A model generated the notes under the pieces. The model did not search any database. It was not told the DNA's origin and worked only from the letters and a program-made list of their open reading frames with translations. From the IMG/VR virus record IMGVR_UViG_3300036770_004143, positions 1-64,000 of that record: a DNA stretch of 64,000 bases; one strand, 5' to 3'. The position numbers were made by a program, and so were the translations under genes. Below are positions 250-54,562 of the stretch, in pieces (positions within the stretch are counted from its first letter, which is position 1; the number at the start of each line of letters is the position of its first letter).

Positions 250-1956
250 TTAAAATAAATCATCTTCTGTTATGCTCTTGCTCTTTTTATTATAATCAAC
301 TGATTTCTTATAAAAAAAATCTCCCTCCTTTGTTGATAAAATCTCCACATCAAACCATAATGTCTTCTCAATCTCTGTAAAATCAACTTCAAATACTGAT
401 TTCATCCCAATTCTATTTAATGAATTATTAAATCTATTTTGAATGAAATGTTTAATTGTATCTTTTGATAAAAAACTTAATTCACCATTCTCAAATATCC
501 AATCCAATATTCCACATTCAGCTGCATATGCTTTATGACAAGCTGACACAATCAACGCTTCAAATTCTTCGTCAAACCATTCTGGATTTTCTTCTTTGAT
601 AATGTTGATAAGTTCTGATCCAAAATTACCATGGATTTCTTCCTCCTTTGAGGTAGCTTCAACCACATTTGAAATACCTTTGAATAGATTTTTCTCCTTG
701 TTGAAGGACATCATAATCAAGAACTGACTAAATAAACTTACATGTTCAATAAACAAGGAAAATAATAATACAGACTTTGTGTACATTTTATTCTCTTTAC
801 TCCTTGTCCCATCTAAATATTTTGCCAAATAACTGATTCTATTCTTTATAGCAGGAATTTCAATAACAGTCTGGAACTCATTCTCCAATCCAAGAATTCT
901 TAATAATTGAGCATAAGCATCCTTATGACGAACTTCCGAGTTTCCTGAAATTAAAACTTTGTCATTATATCTAGTCACAATACATCCAGTAGGAACTGTA
1001 ACACAATAGATGTTACCATCATAATCTTCAATGGTAGGTTTATCAGTTATAGAAGAAAAGGTGTTAGTTTTTACAAAACTTACATTGTATATATCTTTAT
1101 CATTAGTTATATCAACTACATACCCAGCAAAAATACCTATAACTTGCAAATTATCTGCAAACAATTTACTAATAGTTTGGTGTTTAATAACATAATCACC
1201 ATTCTGAGTGTCACTATCAAGTTTAGACCCCTCCAATTTTGTTAATTCATAAATAAAAGAATTGCACCACTTTTCAGATTTATCTGATAAATCAATACAA
1301 TCAAAGTTTCCAATATTAATTTTATCATCCAAACTCAACTCATCCACACCCTCATTAACAAATTTACCAGAAAAAGGCAATTTCATATCACTACTAAATT
1401 TACCAATATCTTTTATAGCCTTCTTTATAATATTACCACTCCTTGTTTTGTAGTAGATATTATGGTTGGGGGTTAGTAATGCATTATATGTTTGGTTCTC
1501 AATCCTATGCATCTTTCCCTTGTAAGGTTCATTGATAATATTACTTGGTAAAACAGATGTCATTGTATTGGTTTCTAAATCATATTGAATAACCTCTGTA
1601 TTATTATCAATATCCTTAAAGTTAACCCAACCTTTTGGTGTTAATATTTCAGTTCCCTCACCATGACATTCGGCAAAAGTCATACCAACATCACCAATTT
1701 CAGTTATTGGCATCCTCTTATACAAGTCAGCCCAGAATGTTTTTACATTTACCTCAATTTGAGCAATTGCCAACATTGACCTTTTAATAACCTCCCTCTC
1801 CTCATTTGATATCTTTGTTTTATAATCATCAATATCAGTTGTGAAATTGAATTCAGAGTGTATCCAGTATGAGTGTCTAATTGCATCCTTATATGCTAAT
1901 AAGGATGGATATTCATAAGGCAAAATGTTTATCCTCTTTTCAAAAATGTTCTTCAT
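250..1956 (-). CDS. nrdB: Ribonucleotide reductase class I beta subunit containing an intein
   Basis: Ferritin-like R2 motifs (QIE, E-VRH, IEHVSLFSQF, EEEIH, C-terminal DFF...Y), interrupted by a 243-aa insert. Confidence 0.92.
   Translation of the reverse strand: MKNIFEKRINILPYEYPSLLAYKDAIRHSYWIHSEFNFTTDIDDYKTKISNEEREVIKRSMLAIAQIEVNVKTFWADLYKRMPITEIGDVGMTFAECHGEGTEILTPKGWVNFKDIDNNTEVIQYDLETNTMTSVLPSNIINEPYKGKMHRIENQTYNALLTPNHNIYYKTRSGNIIKKAIKDIGKFSSDMKLPFSGKFVNEGVDELSLDDKINIGNFDCIDLSDKSEKWCNSFIYELTKLEGSKLDSDTQNGDYVIKHQTISKLFADNLQVIGIFAGYVVDITNDKDIYNVSFVKTNTFSSITDKPTIEDYDGNIYCVTVPTGCIVTRYNDKVLISGNSEVRHKDAYAQLLRILGLENEFQTVIEIPAIKNRISYLAKYLDGTRSKENKMYTKSVLLFSLFIEHVSLFSQFLIMMSFNKEKNLFKGISNVVEATSKEEEIHGNFGSELINIIKEENPEWFDEEFEALIVSACHKAYAAECGILDWIFENGELSFLSKDTIKHFIQNRFNNSLNRIGMKSVFEVDFTEIEKTLWFDVEILSTKEGDFFYKKSVDYNKKSKSITEDDLF
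940..1668 (-). mobile_element. cis intein in nrdB (243 aa) with degenerate LAGLIDADG remnant
   Basis: Begins CHGEGTEILTPKGW, block B LTPNH, ends YCVTVPTGCIVTRYNDKVLISGN/S. Excision restores FAE-SEVRH. Confidence 0.9.
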
Positions 1957-2033
1957 ATATTTTTTTTTATTGGTTAAGATAAATATGAAACCAGGTTATA
2001 AAAGTATTCAATTTTGATTATAAAATCAAATTT

Positions 2034-2492
2034 TTATAAAAAATTGTCATTGCTATTTTTCTTAACCAATAACTCCTTAATCCTTTCTTTCTTACGTTCC
2101 ACTTGTTGTTCCTCAAACCCTAGGAATGTTGCTGTTGTATCGGTATCAATTTCAAGCATTTCATTATCAAACTTGCAATTCTCAAACACAATACCATCTT
2201 TACCAATCCTTGACTTGGTTATTGCCACAGTTGCCAAATTCATCTCTTTCTGTTGCAAACTCTTTGCAATACTAATAATAACATGGCCAACCTGGGCTTT
2301 CTTTATTGACCCCCCCATTTGGTCATTTGTTACCACATTTGCAGAAATAGATGAGTTGTGTGTGTAAATGTCATTGGCATAAAACATATGGGTGTCATCA
2401 ACAGTAATGTCAATTGTATCCTCTTCACCTACCAATTCAATTGATTCAATTTCATCTAAAATAAAATCATTCTTGTTTAAAATTTGTTCCAT
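2034..2492 (-). CDS. Split-intein C-part (46 aa, 2355-2492) fused to the C-terminal fragment of a DnaB/gp41-like helicase
   Basis: ...DTIDITVDDTHMFYANDIYTHN/SS followed by helicase motifs (SIKKAQVGHVII, ITKSRIGKDG). Confidence 0.9.
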   Translation of the reverse strand: MEQILNKNDFILDEIESIELVGEEDTIDITVDDTHMFYANDIYTHNSSISANVVTNDQMGGSIKKAQVGHVIISIAKSLQQKEMNLATVAITKSRIGKDGIVFENCKFDNEMLEIDTDTTATFLGFEEQQVERKKERIKELLVKKNSNDNFL

Positions 2493-3699
2493 TTTTTAAA
2501 AAATTTAAGCAGTTATTTATTACAAAATCTTTATTACTCATATATTCAGATTCCTTGACCCTTTTAACAATATAACCTTTTTTAACCAAAAAATCATCTC
2601 TATTGCTATCTATCTTTTTTTGTTCATCTTTTGAATGCCAGTAATCCCCATCAAATTCTATTATTTTATTACCTAATTTAAAATCAACACTTATTATAGT
2701 CATATTATTCTCCCAAACATAAAAAACATACTCATTATTTAGTTCGTAAAAATAACAATTTAACCTATCATCATTTTCTAATTTAGAAAAAATACCCCAA
2801 AATAAATCTTGTGAAATTTTTGAATACTTATCTTTGAATACAGAGATTTTTGCCATCAAAAATTCTTTATACTTAATCTCCCCATCAAATTCCCCGTATT
2901 TTTCAATAAAAAATTCTTTGCTTTGTGAAAATTTTATCTTGGATATAAAGTCATCATATCTAATTTTACCATCAATATCACCATATCTATCTATAAATGA
3001 GTTTAAAGTTGTTTTAACCATACTAACACAATACTCATTCCAAAATTTCAACCCCTCTGTCTCCCCATGTTTATCAATATAATATGTCAAACTAAACCTA
3101 TATGATTGCCTTTGATTCCTATCATACCATTTCTTATAACCTAATTCAACACCATATCTATTTTGATATTCAGGTAATGTCCTCCCATTCCTATATGGTC
3201 TAATTTTTTTGTTTTTAGCCATAGTTGCAATTTTGGAATTTAATGTGTTTTCCCATCTTTTTCTACCCTCTTCTTCGCCATATCTCTCTATTGCTGGTTT
3301 TAAGCCATATGAAACAGCTTTTTTATTTCTTTGTTCCCATTTTTTTGTGCCAAGATCAATTCCATATTTTTTTATAAAGTTATTTTTATCCATCTTAACT
3401 TTATCTTTATATTCATCTTGTTTTATTTTCCAATTATCCCCGTATCTTATTTTACAAGCATACTCACTAATGGCATCATTTTTTAACTTTCTAACAATAA
3501 CACCTAACCTACCTAACCATTTAGATTCAACATTGTTTAATATGAAATCACTTATATTTAGTAATCTATTTTTTATAGAATTAGTATCATAATATTCTAT
3601 AATTTTATAAATTTCACAATATTGATTTTTAGTTATCAAATGTTTAACTTCTTTAATTTTCTTATAATTAAGAAATTGTTCAATAGTAATTACCCCCAT
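2467..3699 (-). CDS. Free-standing putative homing endonuclease with a Vsr/DUF559-like C-terminal nuclease domain
   Basis: C-terminal VDFKLGNKIIEFDGDYWH...D..RD...GYIVKRV; repeated (K/R)YG...G...W/Y units; lies between the two split-intein halves. Confidence 0.8.
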   Translation of the reverse strand: MGVITIEQFLNYKKIKEVKHLITKNQYCEIYKIIEYYDTNSIKNRLLNISDFILNNVESKWLGRLGVIVRKLKNDAISEYACKIRYGDNWKIKQDEYKDKVKMDKNNFIKKYGIDLGTKKWEQRNKKAVSYGLKPAIERYGEEEGRKRWENTLNSKIATMAKNKKIRPYRNGRTLPEYQNRYGVELGYKKWYDRNQRQSYRFSLTYYIDKHGETEGLKFWNEYCVSMVKTTLNSFIDRYGDIDGKIRYDDFISKIKFSQSKEFFIEKYGEFDGEIKYKEFLMAKISVFKDKYSKISQDLFWGIFSKLENDDRLNCYFYELNNEYVFYVWENNMTIISVDFKLGNKIIEFDGDYWHSKDEQKKIDSNRDDFLVKKGYIVKRVKESEYMSNKDFVINNCLNFLKNGTNFKQE

Positions 3700-3751
3700 C
3701 TAATTTTATTTTAATATAAATATCACAAATGTTAAATAAGTTAGATGGGGG
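3693..3751 (-). promoter_or_regulatory. RNA hairpin sequestering the endonuclease start codon, with a TATTTATA motif in the loop
   Basis: 11-bp perfect inverted repeat CCCCCATCTAA (3693-3703) / TTAGATGGGGG (3741-3751); one arm contains the ATG; motif at 3715-3722. Confidence 0.7.
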
Positions 3752-3756
3752 CACAA

Positions 3757-5082
3757 TTATTTTTTAATAAAAAGTGTATTACCAACAGACAATCCACTGT
3801 CAATGGATAAGAAACCCCCACCTAATGTTGGAAATTTGTGTTTTGCTGACACTTTTATTTCCTTTCCATTTTTTGTCTTAATTCTATAAACAGGCTGTTT
3901 CTCAATAGGGAATACATAACTAATTTCTTTATATCCTTTATGTGTTAGAATATTATCTCCAACAACAACATCCTTTATTTGAATCAATCCTTTATTCTCA
4001 ATATCCACAATAGTATCTAAAGAAACACAGCGATTTCCTTGTGTACCTAACCATCCAGCAATATTTAATTCATGACACATAGCCTCAAAGTGTCTAATAA
4101 CTGATCCTTCATTCTTCCACTCATCATTACCTTGTCTATCTGGAACAACACAATCAATATAATCCAAAACAACCAAATCAAGTTTAATACCATCAGCAAT
4201 AATCTTTCTAATTTGATTCTTAATTTGATTCATTGTCAATGTGTCAGATGGCAATTTCTTTAAAATCAACTTATTTGTATGAGTTTCTTTTATATTATTA
4301 ACAGTTTCATAAACAACATCCTTATGATTTGGTAATTCATCTGGGGATATTTTTGTCCAAAGAGTAATGTGTTTTCTCTGAATAATTTTTGGATTATCTT
4401 CAAAAAAGATATGTAGAACATTATAATTGTTATTGAATGCTGTGTTTGCAACCAAGGTCAATAGAGTTGATTTACCAATACCTGGACCTGCAAATATAAT
4501 ACCAACCTCACCTTTGGCTAACCCCCCCTTTAAGAGAACGTCTATGCCCTTTACACCCATTGGTATGGGGTGTCTATAATCCTCATCCAATACACCCACC
4601 AAGTCATTAAAAACCTCAAAACCGTTTGATTCCTTAACACCAACTTGCAAGGCATATCTTAATAACTCCTCAAGTTGATCATAAGATTCAAAGTCACCCT
4701 CATTAATGACTTTCTGTGCCTTTTCCAAAACAATCTTAACTTCTTCTTGTTTGCAGAATTTAAGTGCTTTTTCTTGAACAAGTTCAACACCATCTAATGG
4801 CGCTGAACTTATTTTAGTTATAGTGTCAATCACAATCTTCAATGCCAATTCTTGTGATATTTCAGATTTGGCAATCATATTTAGTGTTTCAAAGTTTGGG
4901 GCTGCATCATATTTCTTATGATACTCCTTAATCATTTGTATGATTAACTTAAAATACTTATTCTCAAAATAAGATATTTTAATAAAATCTAATATGGCTC
5001 TTGCAAATTCCTTATCTAAAATAATCTGATTGATTAATTGCAACTGGAACGTCTGACCCAGGTAATCAAAATTCTTTGACAT
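3757..5082 (-). CDS. DnaB/gp41-like replicative helicase N-terminal fragment fused to split-intein N-part (90 aa, 3760-4029)
   Basis: Walker A AGPGIGKST, Walker B LVVLDYID, GTQGNR, then CVSLDT...SAKHKFPT...GLSVGNTLFIKK-stop. Confidence 0.92.
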   Translation of the reverse strand: MSKNFDYLGQTFQLQLINQIILDKEFARAILDFIKISYFENKYFKLIIQMIKEYHKKYDAAPNFETLNMIAKSEISQELALKIVIDTITKISSAPLDGVELVQEKALKFCKQEEVKIVLEKAQKVINEGDFESYDQLEELLRYALQVGVKESNGFEVFNDLVGVLDEDYRHPIPMGVKGIDVLLKGGLAKGEVGIIFAGPGIGKSTLLTLVANTAFNNNYNVLHIFFEDNPKIIQRKHITLWTKISPDELPNHKDVVYETVNNIKETHTNKLILKKLPSDTLTMNQIKNQIRKIIADGIKLDLVVLDYIDCVVPDRQGNDEWKNEGSVIRHFEAMCHELNIAGWLGTQGNRCVSLDTIVDIENKGLIQIKDVVVGDNILTHKGYKEISYVFPIEKQPVYRIKTKNGKEIKVSAKHKFPTLGGGFLSIDSGLSVGNTLFIKK

Positions 5083-5093
5083 AAAAATAAAGA

Positions 5094-38080: not shown

Positions 38081-39838
38081 ATGGTAAAAAAGAAAATAAC
38101 AAAAGATGATGCTTTAGAAATATTGAAAAATTATAATGGTGATAATAATTATTTAATTAACATCCGTAATTTATCATTTGATAATCCAAATTTCTATTTG
38201 ACAGATAGTCAGATTGAGTATATATCATTATTTAATGAAACAAAACCAAAGGTTGCAAGAAAGTGGGTTGAATTGGATCCTTATTATGCAAAAATGATTG
38301 CTGATGATAAGTTATTGGTTAGAATCCCAGAGAAAATGTGGGTTGAAAAATTATTGGTTGAGAAGGAAAAATCATATCATATTTTTGGTAGATTTTTTGA
38401 AAATGATAGATTAAATCTTTATTGGATTCCAAAGGATGCAATTGTTGTTGATAAAACAAATAAGGATGTTGTGGTTGATTTTGAAAAGTATTCTCATAGA
38501 ATGCCATTTGAACACCAGAAGGAGGCAATTATAAAGTTGCTTGAGAATGATAAATTCATATTGGCAGATGACATGGGTTTGGGTAAGACAAGTTCTGCCA
38601 TTGTGGCTTCAATTGAAGCAAAACCAACTAAAATATTAATAATATGTCCAGCAAGTTTGAAGCAGAATTGGGAAAGAGAAATTAGGAATTACACAGATAA
38701 GCCCATTTATATTTGCGAAGGTAAAAAATATGATGATAATGCTAATTTTGTTATTATTAATTATGATATTTTAAAGAACTTTCATTCATTGAAATCAAAA
38801 GAGGAATCAATTATTCAAAAATCAAAATTTGATTTAATCATATTGGATGAATGTCATCTTGTTAAAAATCCACAAGCATCAAGAACCAAATTAATAAATG
38901 ATATTTGCAAAGATATAAAGAAAATTTGGCTATTAACTGGAACACCATTAACATCACGACCAATTGATTATTTCAATTTATTATCATTGGTTGATAGTCC
39001 TGTTGCAAGAAACTGGATGGCATATGTTAAAAGATATTGTGCTGGGTATCAATTTACTGTTGGGTTTAATAAGGTATGGAATGTGAATGGTGCATCAAAT
39101 CTGGATGAATTAAGGGAGAGAACAGCACCATTATTATTAAGGCGTTTAAAAGAGAATGTGTTAGATTTGCCAGAAAAGATAATAACACCAGTTTATTTAA
39201 CATTAAAATCAAAAGAATATGAGAATGTGATGGGTGAATATTTTGATTGGGTAAAGAACAATCCAAAGGAATCAAAATCATTGAGTGTTCAATTTACTAA
39301 ACTTATGAAAGTTAGGCAAATAATTGCTGATGAAAAGATTAAGAACACCATAGAATTGATTGAGAATACCTTGGAACAAGAAAGGAAGGTGATTGTGTTT
39401 TCAAATTTCACAAACTCATTAGATAAGATATATGAGCATTTTAAGAAAATTGCAGTAAAATTGGATGGAAGTTCAACAATGAAACAAAGACAAGATAGTG
39501 TGGATAAATTTCAAAATGAAGATAATATTAAAGTTTTTGTTGGGAATATAAAGGCTGCAGGTGTTGGTTTAACATTAACACGTGGTGATGTTGTTATCTT
39601 TAATGATTTATCTTTTGTTCCAGCCGATCATAGTCAGGCAGAAGATAGAGCATATAGAATTGGTCAGAAAAATTCTGTATCTGTATTATATCCAATATTT
39701 GAGAATACCATTGAGGGAATTATATATGATATGTTGGATAGGAAGAAAAAGATTATATCAACAGTATTGGGTGATAACTTAATTGAAGGGGATGTTAGTG
39801 AAGATATTTTAACACAAATATTAAATTTTGGAAAATAA
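38081..39838 (+). CDS. SNF2-family helicase/ATPase (SMARCAL1/HARP-like)
   Basis: ADDMGLGKT, ICPASL, DECH, LTGTP, LRRLK, AAGVGLTL, QAEDRAYRIGQ. Confidence 0.92.
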   Translation: MVKKKITKDDALEILKNYNGDNNYLINIRNLSFDNPNFYLTDSQIEYISLFNETKPKVARKWVELDPYYAKMIADDKLLVRIPEKMWVEKLLVEKEKSYHIFGRFFENDRLNLYWIPKDAIVVDKTNKDVVVDFEKYSHRMPFEHQKEAIIKLLENDKFILADDMGLGKTSSAIVASIEAKPTKILIICPASLKQNWEREIRNYTDKPIYICEGKKYDDNANFVIINYDILKNFHSLKSKEESIIQKSKFDLIILDECHLVKNPQASRTKLINDICKDIKKIWLLTGTPLTSRPIDYFNLLSLVDSPVARNWMAYVKRYCAGYQFTVGFNKVWNVNGASNLDELRERTAPLLLRRLKENVLDLPEKIITPVYLTLKSKEYENVMGEYFDWVKNNPKESKSLSVQFTKLMKVRQIIADEKIKNTIELIENTLEQERKVIVFSNFTNSLDKIYEHFKKIAVKLDGSSTMKQRQDSVDKFQNEDNIKVFVGNIKAAGVGLTLTRGDVVIFNDLSFVPADHSQAEDRAYRIGQKNSVSVLYPIFENTIEGIIYDMLDRKKKIISTVLGDNLIEGDVSEDILTQILNFGK

Positions 39839-53360: not shown

Positions 53361-53398
53361 AAAGGGGTAGAATACTACCCCTTTTTTTATTATATTTG
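53361..53398 (+). terminator. Terminator followed by a TAnnTTTG box for metK
   Basis: AAAGGGGTAG-AATA-CTACCCCTTTTTTT, then TATATTTG (53391-98). Confidence 0.65.
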
Positions 53399-53428
53399 TA
53401 TTCATTACATAACTTAAAACAAAAAAAT

Positions 53429-54562
53429 ATGAGATTAATAACATCAGAGAGTGTTTCTTGTGGGCATCCAGATAAGGTTGCTGATCAGATTTCAGATGCC
53501 ATTTTGGATGCTTACCTTACATTAGACCCCAATGCAAAGGTTGCAGTTGAAACAATGGTAAAAGACAATTGTGTGGTATTAGGGGGTGAAATTACTAGCA
53601 CTCATACAATTAATTATGAGAACATTATCAAAGCTGTGATTGAAGATATTGGCTACCATGATGCTAATCATGGGTTTTATTTCAATAATATCACTATAAT
53701 TAATTTGATTGGAAAACAAAGTCCTGAAATTAATTCTGCTGTTTTACAGAATGGTGAAGAATCTTTGGGGGCAGGCGATCAAGGTTTTATGACAGGATTT
53801 GCAACAAATGAAACAGAAACATATATGCCAATTGGTATGTATGTTGCAAAGAAATTGGCAGATTATGTTTATAGTCTTGATTTAGGTCCAGATATTAAAA
53901 CACAAGTGACAATTGAAGAATGGCCTGATTTTAAAAGAATCCATACCATTTTGGTTTCTACAATGCATAGGACATTTACCTTGGAAGAGTTGAGGACAAA
54001 ACTCACTAAATTCATCTATGATAATAATATGGAACTTCAAGATGATATATTTGCACTTATTGACAAGGAAACAAAAATTGTTATAAATCCAGCTGGTTCT
54101 TGGCATGTTGGTGGTCCAGTTGCAGATTGTGGTGTTACAGGAAGAAAGATTGTGGTTGACCAATATGGACCATATAACCCTGTTGGTGGGGGTGCATTTA
54201 GTGGAAAAGACCCAAGCAAGGTAGATAGAAGTGGTGCTTATTTAGCAAGGTATATTGCAAAAAACATTGTAGCAGCAGGGTTTGCAGATAAATGTGCTGT
54301 TGAAATTGCTTATATGATTGGCGTTGCTAAACCAGCATCACTAAACATAAACACATTTGGGCAATATTCTAATGAATGGTTAGAGGATATTGTTAGTAGG
54401 ATATTCCCAATGACACCATCTAGCATTATTGATCATTTTAATTTGAAAAGACCAATCTATCTTGATTCATCAAGAGGTCATTTTGGAAATGATATAATGC
54501 CTTGGGAAAAATTGGATATGGTTTATGAGTTAAAGCAATTAGCGGCTATTCATAAGGTTTAG
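53429..54562 (+). CDS. metK: S-adenosylmethionine synthetase
   Basis: TSESVSCGHPDKVADQISD, GAGDQG, KTQVT, G.TGRKIVVDQYG, GGGAFSGKDPSKVDRS, GHFG. Confidence 0.97.
   Translation: MRLITSESVSCGHPDKVADQISDAILDAYLTLDPNAKVAVETMVKDNCVVLGGEITSTHTINYENIIKAVIEDIGYHDANHGFYFNNITIINLIGKQSPEINSAVLQNGEESLGAGDQGFMTGFATNETETYMPIGMYVAKKLADYVYSLDLGPDIKTQVTIEEWPDFKRIHTILVSTMHRTFTLEELRTKLTKFIYDNNMELQDDIFALIDKETKIVINPAGSWHVGGPVADCGVTGRKIVVDQYGPYNPVGGGAFSGKDPSKVDRSGAYLARYIAKNIVAAGFADKCAVEIAYMIGVAKPASLNINTFGQYSNEWLEDIVSRIFPMTPSSIIDHFNLKRPIYLDSSRGHFGNDIMPWEKLDMVYELKQLAAIHKV

Follow-up and report, generated by a model that had tools for sequence, protein, structure and literature searches.

The helicase locus of the window (the whole 64-kb stretch of DNA that was analysed) is very likely a functional 'fractured' replicative helicase gene belonging to an uncultured freshwater phage of roughly 270 kb. 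What the data show directly is how the locus is built, its homologies and conservation, the purifying selection on it and its polymorphism within the population; the splicing itself, the target of the nuclease and the control of its timing are inferred. The category of the locus is unchanged by our analysis: earlier publications already cover its arrangement as well as its intein group and nuclease family.

We propose that minus-strand transcription would lead to two polypeptides, one composed of the helicase N-extein and a positively charged 90-aa IntN, the other of a negatively charged 46-aa IntC and the helicase C-extein. The intein halves would associate and fold as a single HINT domain, and class-1 protein trans-splicing via Cys1, the block-B His, the penultimate His, the terminal Asn and Ser+1 would then yield a 457-aa DnaB-like helicase with the predicted junction GTQGNR-SSISANVV. 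The selfish cassette between the two halves would encode an EDxHD (Vsr-like) homing endonuclease.

Layout of the helicase locus

In the ORF listing the locus comprises three minus-strand ORFs, encoding the N-fragment, the nuclease and the C-fragment in that order. Their parts are as follows (the slash marks the insertion site here and below).

3757..5082, minus strand: N-fragment ORF, 441 aa, ending in IntN (CVSLDT...SAKHKFPT...LFIKK, then stop)
4030..5082, minus strand: helicase N-extein, 351 aa, N-terminal domain and RecA-like core, up to the Q-G-N-R motif
3760..4029, minus strand: IntN, 90 aa, Cys1 present, block B SAKH
3757..3759, minus strand: TAA stop of the N-fragment, the first of three in-frame stops ahead of the nuclease ATG
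2467..3699, minus strand: nuclease ORF, 410 aa plus stop, a free-standing homing endonuclease gene
2467..2492, minus strand: overlap of the nuclease and IntC ORFs, 26 nt, the nuclease 3' end lying over the IntC start in a different frame
2034..2492, minus strand: C-fragment ORF, 152 aa, beginning with IntC (...MFYANDIYTHN/SSISANVV)
2355..2492, minus strand: IntC, 46 aa, ending in THN
2034..2354, minus strand: helicase C-extein, 106 aa plus stop, first residue Ser+1
2462..3760, minus strand: cassette, 1299 nt, absent from the contiguous mini-intein relative L001 (blastn)
2355..4029, minus strand: composite element (IntN, cassette and IntC), 1675 nt, missing in intein-less alleles (blastn against L003)

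A sequence-only reading of this DNA had described a helicase N-fragment ending in a 90-aa IntN, a 410-aa nuclease ORF next to it and a separate ORF that opens with a 46-aa IntC and carries the remainder of the helicase, and had recognised in them the 'fractured gene' layout of gp41-type split inteins. The three ORFs agree with this description in every part, and both the layout and the domain matches correspond to fractured genes as defined by Dassa et al. (2009, PMC2677866). In fractured genes the 3' end of the nuclease overlaps the downstream IntC ORF by 6-69 bp (Dassa et al. 2009, PMC2677866), a range that includes the 26 nt found at 2467-2492. The ATG of the IntC ORF is its only usable start, with a stop codon two codons upstream. 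The splice-site codons can be read off directly: Arg-1 at 4032-4030, Cys1 at 4029-4027, the terminal Asn at 2357-2355 and Ser+1 at 2354-2352. Upstream of the locus lie an ORF of 152 aa and a gene for RNase H.

The N-extein matched Pfam DnaB_C (E 1.1e-12) and the DnaB-like helicase family PHROG 19 (E 2e-47). It is 94% identical to the intein-less relative P0003, and the C-extein is 95% identical to the C-terminal part of the same protein; the two exteins add up to 351 + 106 = 457 aa, which is exactly the length of P0003. Intein-less relatives, likewise 457 aa long, read GTQGNR/SAISSQVV across the insertion site. Among 50,697 GenBank phages, megablast of the locus returned no match and tblastn found helicases of only 24-28% identity, so that the host and its biology have no cultured relative as an anchor.

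The nuclease cassette and its leader

The nuclease matched Pfam DUF559 and MTES_1575 and has 570 homologs. Its two regions and the elements of its leader are listed below.

2830..3468, minus strand: N-terminal part of the nuclease (about aa 78-290), made up of seven helical-hairpin repeats, repeat motif YG-x3-G-x3-W/Y
2491..2820, minus strand: nuclease catalytic domain (about aa 294-403), EDxHD/Vsr-like
3691..3753, minus strand: RNA hairpin, 13-bp outer stem, nuclease start codon (3699-3697) in the 3' arm
3715..3723, minus strand: ATATTTATA, motif resembling a late-type promoter, placed in the loop of the hairpin and 15 nt ahead of the nuclease ATG

In the catalytic domain, residues E323, D339, E348, H355 and D364 are invariant across 42 homologs. 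The top PDB fold match was 3R3P, the catalytic domain of I-Bth0305I (probability 1.00, target TM 0.68), and sequence alignment placed D339, H355 and D364 onto D196, H213 and D222 of that structure. Judged by these matches, the predicted nuclease is a member of the EDxHD/Vsr-like family that includes I-Bth0305I (Taylor et al. 2011, PDB 3R3P) and that was originally described from fractured genes. The two proteins share the catalytic fold with aligned E/D/E/H/D residues as well as a bipartite build in which a DNA-binding part precedes the nuclease. However, I-Bth0305I is intron-encoded, 266 aa long and equipped with two NUMOD motifs, whereas the window nuclease is free-standing inside an intein, has 410 aa and carries seven YG-x3-G-x3-W helical repeats that fall into no Pfam family. 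Up to E 10, nuclease residues 1-290 gave no Pfam match, to NUMOD or otherwise, and the repeat region matched only PHROG 22677, whose function is unknown. A 42-sequence alignment revealed invariant G/W columns at a spacing of 26-42 residues, and the AF2 model of the repeats is all-helical with a pLDDT of about 90. We presume that this seven-repeat N-terminal array is a DNA-binding module.

Comparison with L001 by blastn showed flanks of 90-92% identity, with 11 nt of L001 in place of the 1299-nt cassette. What is new here is that the cassette itself provides, along with the nuclease gene, the stop upstream of it, the hairpin over its start codon, the late-type promoter motif and the start codon of IntC. 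A hairpin in the 5' leader of the nuclease, often with a phage late promoter element, has been reported for fractured genes (Dassa et al. 2009, PMC2677866). The same feature is present in the window, where the hairpin covers the ATG and ATATTTATA sits in its loop, but the motif differs from the published TATAAATA. The hairpin folds with -22.1 kcal/mol (z -4.0). In many relatives (L026-L031, L038, L041, L044, L046) the start codon is also paired with upstream sequence in the minimum free energy fold, each time using different sequences; a strong hairpin is not universal, the leaders of L007, L009 and L021 folding weakly.

Of the 12 copies of ATATTTATA in the window, seven precede a gene start on the same strand by 11-20 nt, where 0.22 would be expected, and the genes preceded by it include the tail sheath gene and a head-tail adaptor-like gene. 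A close variant of the motif occurs in the nuclease leaders of most relatives. The T4 late consensus TATAAATA was not enriched upstream of window genes (1 of 18 copies). A generic sigma-70 scan gave 21 promoter-like sites against 24.8 expected in AT-rich DNA, and no terminators were found. A TTAACA-16-TAAAAT match in the leader was considered as a promoter and set aside, as the sigma-70 scan did not rise above chance. Four short metatranscriptome contigs make up the RNA evidence, in which DNA carry-over is possible.

With its start codon buried in the hairpin and the late motif in the loop, the nuclease should be silent on read-through early transcripts; late transcripts that start inside the hairpin would allow its translation. 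A similar arrangement is known from Aeh1 mobE in nrdA (Gibb and Edgell, in the summary given by Dassa et al. 2009). According to that summary, mobE is likewise a free-standing nuclease gene splitting an essential phage gene, its translation start is hidden by a hairpin with a late promoter inside, and its 3' end overlaps the downstream piece. As portrayed there it differs in encoding an HNH nuclease, in the lack of an intein with pieces that assemble non-covalently, and in its late promoter motif, which is TATAAATA instead of the ATATTTATA of the window.

Allele states and mobility

IMG/VR contains at least 399 loci with the window nuclease family. Nearly all of the best 80 among them have the helicase layout IntN-nuclease-IntC. 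Syntenic relatives at 65-88% identity share the three-ORF layout, and the junction is always Q-x-x-R/S. Fractured layouts of this kind are already known and occur frequently in phage metagenomes. What is new is that relatives close to identity differ in their allele, which may be intein-less (457 aa), a contiguous mini-intein (586 aa) or fractured. One contig of run X5 joins position 4031 to 2349 with 6 nt between them and reads GNR-SSIS, and fractured and intein-less alleles were found together in one sample. These three allele states in near-identical phage genomes supply the pairs of filled and empty sites that the gene-breaking model of 2009 lacked, and such pairs reveal what the cassette contributes, namely the stop, a late promoter gated by the hairpin, the nuclease gene and the codon at which the downstream half starts.

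At short range, the exteins (90-96% identity) change more slowly than the intein (77%) and the nuclease (67%). Over long distances the intein halves retain 42-76% identity while the exteins drop to 22-33%. The N-extein tree requires at least 12 changes of state, and P0024 and P0088 have near-identical exteins in different states, the former fractured and the latter intein-less. The same nuclease family also occurs in fractured genes for TerL, NrdJ and a GyrB-like protein, as well as at a second site in DnaB. We propose that in mixed infections the nuclease would cut the cassette-free alleles of related phages, and that recombinational repair would copy in the cassette together with the intein halves.

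A recent horizontal arrival of the window's own cassette was considered but is not claimed here: compared with L007, nuclease and IntN show lower similarity than the exteins do, at comparable dS. The data for the sub-lineage of the window and L007 fit vertical descent.

Such vertical inheritance might extend to the whole locus, with a nuclease that has been domesticated, for example for the exclusion of competitor phages or the regulation of helicase supply. The synonymous divergence from L007 is similar for nuclease, IntN and exteins (dS 0.9-1.6), and vertical co-inheritance therefore fits within this sub-lineage. Across the wider family, however, exclusively vertical inheritance sits poorly with the repeated changes of state on the N-extein tree, with the P0024 and P0088 pair, with intein halves that are much better conserved than the exteins of distant helicases and with a nuclease family that recurs in other fractured genes. 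We consider domestication unlikely, and favour a cassette that spreads by homing.

It is tempting to speculate, as a tentative possibility, that the helicase locus represents a live and reversible intein-nuclease cycle and that the seven-repeat array is a previously undescribed modular DNA-recognition domain. In the reverse half of such a cycle, fractured genes would time and again give rise to contiguous cis-splicing mini-inteins when the cassette is deleted at short direct repeats, a healing that would reverse the gene-breaking step proposed in 2009. Three observations argue for this direction. The contiguous alleles form three separate tips of the N-extein tree, each beside fractured relatives; in the pair L092/L091, which is 95-98% identical, copies of the 7-nt repeat AATATTT flank the 1259-nt cassette; and many fractured alleles among those examined, distant ones included, keep the N-terminal extension of IntC (M-x-x-H-x-L-N-x-x-D-F), while the linkers of the contiguous alleles are short and variable.

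The split intein and the break within it

Both intein halves matched the crystal structure of the gp41-1 intein (6QAZ), IntN with an E value of 6e-13 and IntC with 3.5e-6, and a profile of the contiguous relatives matched it from end to end (E 7.5e-25); taken together, these values exceed a chance match. In the profile alignment the split point of gp41-1 falls on the break of the window. Matches to Pfam Intein_splicing reached 27.2 and 18.0 bits, under the gathering score of 35.8. An AlphaFold model of a contiguous relative's intein, calculated from a 4-sequence alignment, reached a pLDDT of 41, and the assignment of the HINT fold therefore rests on sequence homology. The class-1 nucleophile Cys1 directly follows the Arg of QGNR and is invariant in the relatives; the motifs S-A-K-H in IntN and T-H-N/S at the end of IntC occupy the same columns as in 6QAZ. 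The net charge is about +5 for IntN and about -12 for IntC, and gp41-1 and gp41-8 have likewise been reported to consist of halves with opposite net charges (Dassa et al. 2009, PMC2677866).

The nearest characterised relatives are gp41-8, which was found by Dassa et al. (2009), and gp41-1; both splice efficiently, and gp41-8 was characterised by Carvajal-Vallejos et al. (2012) and Pinto et al. (2020). Against the published gp41-8 halves (Pinto 2020), 43 of 86 residues of IntN (50%) and 22 of 40 residues of IntC (55%) are identical. The window intein shares with gp41-8 a phage DnaB/gp41-like helicase host, a fractured-gene locus, half sizes (89 + 45 aa there, 90 + 46 aa here), Cys1 and Ser+1, and a positive IntN paired with a negative IntC. 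It differs in the lineage of the host helicase and in its upstream genes, a DnaG-like ORF for gp41-8 in place of the 152-aa ORF and RNase H. Towards gp41-1 (PDB 6QAZ/6RIZ), the best match of solved structure, IntN is only about 40% and IntC 54% identical. The break lies in the same loop and the IntC core ...FYANDIxTHN is closely similar, but the host of gp41-1 is a T4-like cyanophage gp41 only 21% identical to the window helicase.

The insertion follows the Arg of Q-x-N-R, at the Q-x-N-R/S site implied by the published flanks of gp41-8, a comparison spanning three residues on either side (LNR/SAY for gp41-8, GNR/SSI here, GNR/SAI in intein-less relatives). The gp41-1 insertion (TRSGY/SSSDV) lies three residues further downstream, and alignment with gp41 of cyanophage S-CAM22 sets TQTTRSGF/GSTDV there against TQGNR/S here. 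The resemblance to gp41-8 that the sequence-only reading had pointed out is borne out by these identities and flanks. Its further suggestion of a new allele probably holds only in the sense of a distinct member at the gp41-8 insertion site, not of a close allele: homology to gp41-8 is evident, yet identity is far under the 89-100% seen among the gp41-1 to gp41-7 proteins, and Dassa et al. (2009, PMC2677866) describe allelic inteins as 'very similar'. As the core of IntC resembles gp41-1 and gp41-8 to the same degree, a cross-reaction with either may occur. Both rank among the fastest ligation tools, and the window adds a natural split intein that is maintained by selection. Together with dozens of graded natural variants and with the natural cis-splicing versions, it forms a panel in which speed, extein tolerance and orthogonality can be compared.

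Could the intein halves serve as affinity domains only, bringing together helicase pieces that assemble non-covalently, without peptide ligation? A precedent exists in Aeh1 NrdA, a phage protein whose gene is split by a nuclease and which works without splicing (PMC3045599). Yet every fractured relative examined retains Cys1, the block-B His, the His-Asn terminus and Ser+1. Mere docking would not require these residues, and their conservation therefore counts against it, as does the efficient splicing of gp41-1 and gp41-8. We regard docking alone as very unlikely and retain trans-splicing as the preferred reading.

It is also conceivable that insertion of the nuclease killed the helicase and that the pieces are pseudogene remnants, with another helicase at work. 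The 64 kb inspected are part of a 270-kb genome, and a second replicative helicase could therefore lie elsewhere; a SNF2-type helicase is located at 38081..39838 of the window. Between the window and L007, however, the exteins gave dN/dS values of 0.05 (N-extein) and 0.02 (C-extein), and IntN one of 0.09 (0.26 for the nuclease). The splicing residues and Walker motifs are all intact, and the arrangement is kept across lineages whose exteins are only 22-33% identical. These observations make decay extremely improbable and speak for a helicase gene that is still in use.

The break itself was followed in independent assemblies, the evidence from runs X1 and X5 consisting of assembler contigs. One contig of run X1 covers 1900-4401 and thereby crosses the stop at 3757-3759; one contig of run X5, an unrelated wastewater study, covers 2301-4144, and none of its best-supported differences listed falls at that stop. 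In total, the junctions are crossed by contigs from three independent studies. The position of the FIKK-stop is identical in seven near-identical IMG/VR contigs (L011-L017), and more than 60 diverged relatives, alike in layout, have a stop at the equivalent position. Two more in-frame stops (TAA and TAG) lie between this stop and the nuclease ATG, and the IntC ORF (start 2492) and the nuclease ORF (start 3699) are in different frames; with three in-frame stops and a change of frame, a contiguous intein cannot be reached by any single base error. An intein that is truly contiguous around an embedded nuclease domain, with the stop as the assembly or sequencing error that the sequence-only reading had allowed for, would agree with the frame shared by the nuclease and N-fragment ORFs (5082-3699 = 1383 = 461 x 3), but is effectively refuted by the extra stops, the separate frame of IntC, the contigs and the dozens of relatives that keep the same stop.

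The fractured helicase gene

The helicase locus lies within a replication gene cluster on the minus strand, together with genes for gp32-like and RecA/UvsX-like proteins, a 5'-3' exonuclease (RNase H type), a 152-aa ORF and NrdB, and the window is the initial 64 kb of a 270,075-bp IMG/VR contig (L011). The helicase pieces and the nuclease, all on the minus strand, are arranged as follows:

3757..5082, minus strand: helicase N-fragment ORF, 441 aa (residues 1-351 N-extein, 352-441 IntN)
2467..3699, minus strand: nuclease ORF, 410 aa
2034..2492, minus strand: C-fragment ORF, 152 aa (IntC of 46 aa ending in THN, then Ser and 105 helicase residues)

The N-extein is DnaB-like (Pfam DnaB_C, PHROG 19) as far as the motif GTQGNR, and the 90-aa IntN begins with Cys. 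ORF listing and reading of the sequence bore out the coordinates, lengths, motifs and junction given in the sequence-only reading, and the fractured helicase, split intein and free-standing nuclease that it described are real and were rightly interpreted. Close intein-less relatives encode helicases of 457 aa (351 + 106), and the intein-less protein P0003 reads GTQGNR/SAISSQVV across the site; judged against these, the predicted spliced product is the right protein. Comparison of the window with a fractured relative (L007) gave dN/dS values of 0.05 for the N-extein, 0.09 for IntN, 0.26 for the nuclease and 0.02 for the C-extein, indicating purifying selection on all four.

The gp41-1 intein crystal structure was matched by both IntN (E 6e-13) and IntC (E 3.5e-6), and a profile of the contiguous relatives gave a full-length match to it (E 7.5e-25), in which the gp41-1 break point aligns with that of the window. 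The possibility raised earlier, that the stop at 3757-3759 is an assembly error, was not borne out: three in-frame stops (TAA, TAA, TAG) lie between IntN and the nuclease ATG, the IntC frame differs from that of the nuclease, and independent contigs cross the junctions. Much of this stretch is also present in public runs of nine or more studies, and we compared four of these runs, as assembler contigs, with it. One contig (run X1) spans 1900-4401, another, from an unrelated wastewater run (X5), spans 2301-4144, and two contigs of run X12 together miss just 20 bases; among the best-supported differences listed for the four runs, none falls at the N-fragment stop. By these comparisons, the locus is neither a chance match nor an artefact.

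The suggested resemblance to gp41-8 held when aligned with the sequence from the Pinto 2020 supplement: identity to gp41-8 is 43/86 (50%) for IntN and 22/40 (55%) for IntC, against about 40% and 19/35 (54%) for gp41-1. IntN carries 14 K/R and 9 D/E and IntC 1 K/R and 13 D/E, the charge pattern published for gp41-1 and gp41-8 (Dassa et al. 2009, PMC2677866). The published native junctions are LNR/SAY for gp41-8 and SGY/SSS for gp41-1. Alignment with gp41 of cyanophage S-CAM22 placed the gp41-1 site (TRSGF/GSTDV) three residues downstream of the window site (TQGNR/S), and the window intein therefore occupies the gp41-8 type of site; like it, gp41-8 is inserted after the Arg of Q-x-N-R, as far as the six comparable gp41-8 flanking residues go. 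With its natural variant series, the window split intein is a candidate tool for protein ligation.

The nuclease family and neighboring inteins

The C-terminus of the nuclease matches DUF559 and MTES_1575 (Pfam), and some of its 570 homologs are labelled very-short-patch-repair endonuclease by their sources. Its AlphaFold model (pLDDT 89.6) has 3R3P as best PDB match (probability 1.00, target TM 0.68), which assigns it to the EDxHD family (PMC3239194). E323, D339, E348, H355 and D364 are invariant in a 42-sequence alignment, and D339, H355 and D364 align with D196, H213 and D222 of I-Bth0305I (alignment to 3R3P). Residues about 78-290 form seven helical hairpins with the signature YG-x3-G-x3-W/Y, whereas I-Bth0305I has NUMOD motifs in their place; this region matched no Pfam family, and its sole PHROG match is unannotated.

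Distant members of the nuclease family occur in other fractured genes, namely TerL (loci L078-L083 and L087), NrdJ (L085), a GyrB-like gene (L089) and a second DnaB site (L084). The upstream piece of the fractured TerL stops after just about 25-30 intein residues, ending in TLRDKNTNEIFDVRIGDLYENLL, an atypically short IntN like that of the published AceL-TerL type. An additional LAGLIDADG intein lies in the downstream piece.

Inteins also occur in nearby reductase genes. The NrdB-like ribonucleotide reductase small subunit of the window (250..1956, minus strand, 568 aa) is interrupted in frame by an intein of about 240 aa (FAE/CHGEGTEILT to VLISGN/SEVRH), which terminates in Gly-Asn, not His-Asn. 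NrdB has 652 aa in two close relatives (L001 and L003), with about 243 nt extra at window position ~1320-1337, and is intein-less (315-317 aa) in more distant ones. The large subunit, NrdA, is fragmented in some close relatives (L004 9481-12905 and L006 9481-11597, compared with L003, L005 and L007) into 283 aa, a gap and then 202 or 423 aa, and is contiguous in others (916-917 aa, with a LAGLIDADG intein). By this comparison, NrdA is a second polymorphic intein/nuclease site adjoining the helicase.

The nuclease cassette and its control elements

The closest relative, L001, encodes a protein (P0001) 96% identical to the window N-fragment; its copy of the intein is a contiguous mini-intein of 129 aa, and the nuclease is absent. 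At the DNA level, 1299 nt of the window (3760..2462) correspond to 11 nt in L001, with flanks 90-92% identical. The cassette contributes the TAA that closes the N-fragment, 57 nt of leader, the nuclease gene and the IntC ATG, located within the 3' end of the nuclease gene but in another frame (26-nt overlap). An invading element was expected to supply such parts (Dassa et al. 2009, PMC2677866), and the cassette content, as read from the two loci, fits this prediction. A cleaner pair is L092 (fractured) and L091 (contiguous), which are 95-98% identical: the 1259-nt cassette of L092 is flanked by a 7-nt direct repeat, AATATTT (3818-3831 and 5077-5090), present as a single copy in L091 (3818-3824). 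The repeat is compatible both with microhomology-mediated deletion and with duplication on insertion.

In the leader, 3753..3691 forms a predicted hairpin (-22.1 kcal/mol, z -4.0) with the nuclease start codon in its 3' arm, and in MFE folds of many relatives, not all, the start codon is likewise paired with an upstream arm of differing sequence. The hairpin loop contains ATATTTATA, near variants of which occur in most relatives' leaders. Seven of its 12 window copies lie 11-20 nt upstream of same-strand gene starts (expected 0.22), and the downstream genes include tail sheath and a head-tail adaptor-like gene. Eight gene starts, that of the tail sheath included, are preceded at 11-20 nt by the form (A)TATTTATA (3715, 22614, 24463, 27045, 31244 and 38008, minus strand; 44053 and 44788, plus strand), which is probably the late promoter of the window phage. 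Its reverse complement is the T4 late consensus TATAAATA, for which the window shows no enrichment. By analogy with mobE, the nuclease gene splitting nrdA of phage Aeh1, we infer a control scheme in which the start codon would be hidden in the hairpin in read-through transcripts and exposed in late transcripts starting within the hairpin.

Short contigs from a metatranscriptome library (X15) match 2341-2514, 2833-3091 and 4530-5003 at 95-100% identity, covering parts of the nuclease gene, the nuclease/IntC overlap and the helicase N-fragment; they are possible evidence of transcription, with DNA carry-over as the alternative.

Allele distribution and spread

The kind of arrangement seen here has been known since 2009 and is plentiful in metagenomes, and IMG/VR contains at least 399 related loci; the window locus adds a new member, in which the intein-nuclease life cycle is well resolved. 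Among the 113 closest classifiable helicase homologs, 81 are intein-less, 28 fractured and 4 contiguous, and two further homologs have a second intein in the P-loop. The N-extein tree requires at least 12 state changes, with the contiguous alleles as three separate tips, each beside fractured alleles. The exteins of P0024 (fractured) and P0088 (intein-less) are almost identical, and run X5 holds both a fractured allele (depth about 70) and an intein-less one (depth about 112), in which 4031 is joined to 2349 to read GNR-SSIS.

The junction Q-x-x-R/S is present in 31/31 non-redundant IMG/VR loci. In those of them whose exteins are down to 22-33% identity with the window, IntN is still 42-60% and IntC 59-76% identical; between closely related loci, the intein diverges more quickly than the exteins do. 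This combination of long-range conservation and faster short-range evolution suggests that the element has spread horizontally from one helicase lineage to another.

Two relatives' helicases from outside the window, P0028 and P0029, have an additional intein within the Walker A loop (GVGK/A to THN/T), which starts with Ala, recalls class-3 inteins in its Trp/Cys/Thr positions and contains a nested domain. Both also end in a split IntN and so have two inteins each, one contiguous and one split.

Elsewhere in the window, a 1107-aa ORF surrounded by phage genes (49892..53215, plus strand) combines a CarboxypepD_reg domain with an outer-membrane beta-barrel (E 1.5e-50), a SusC/TonB-dependent-receptor architecture that is unusual cargo for a phage; its neighbors include SAM synthetase (53396..54562) and glycosyltransferases. 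Together with the 30% G+C and distant helicase matches to Flavobacterium phages, this ORF hints at a Bacteroidota host.
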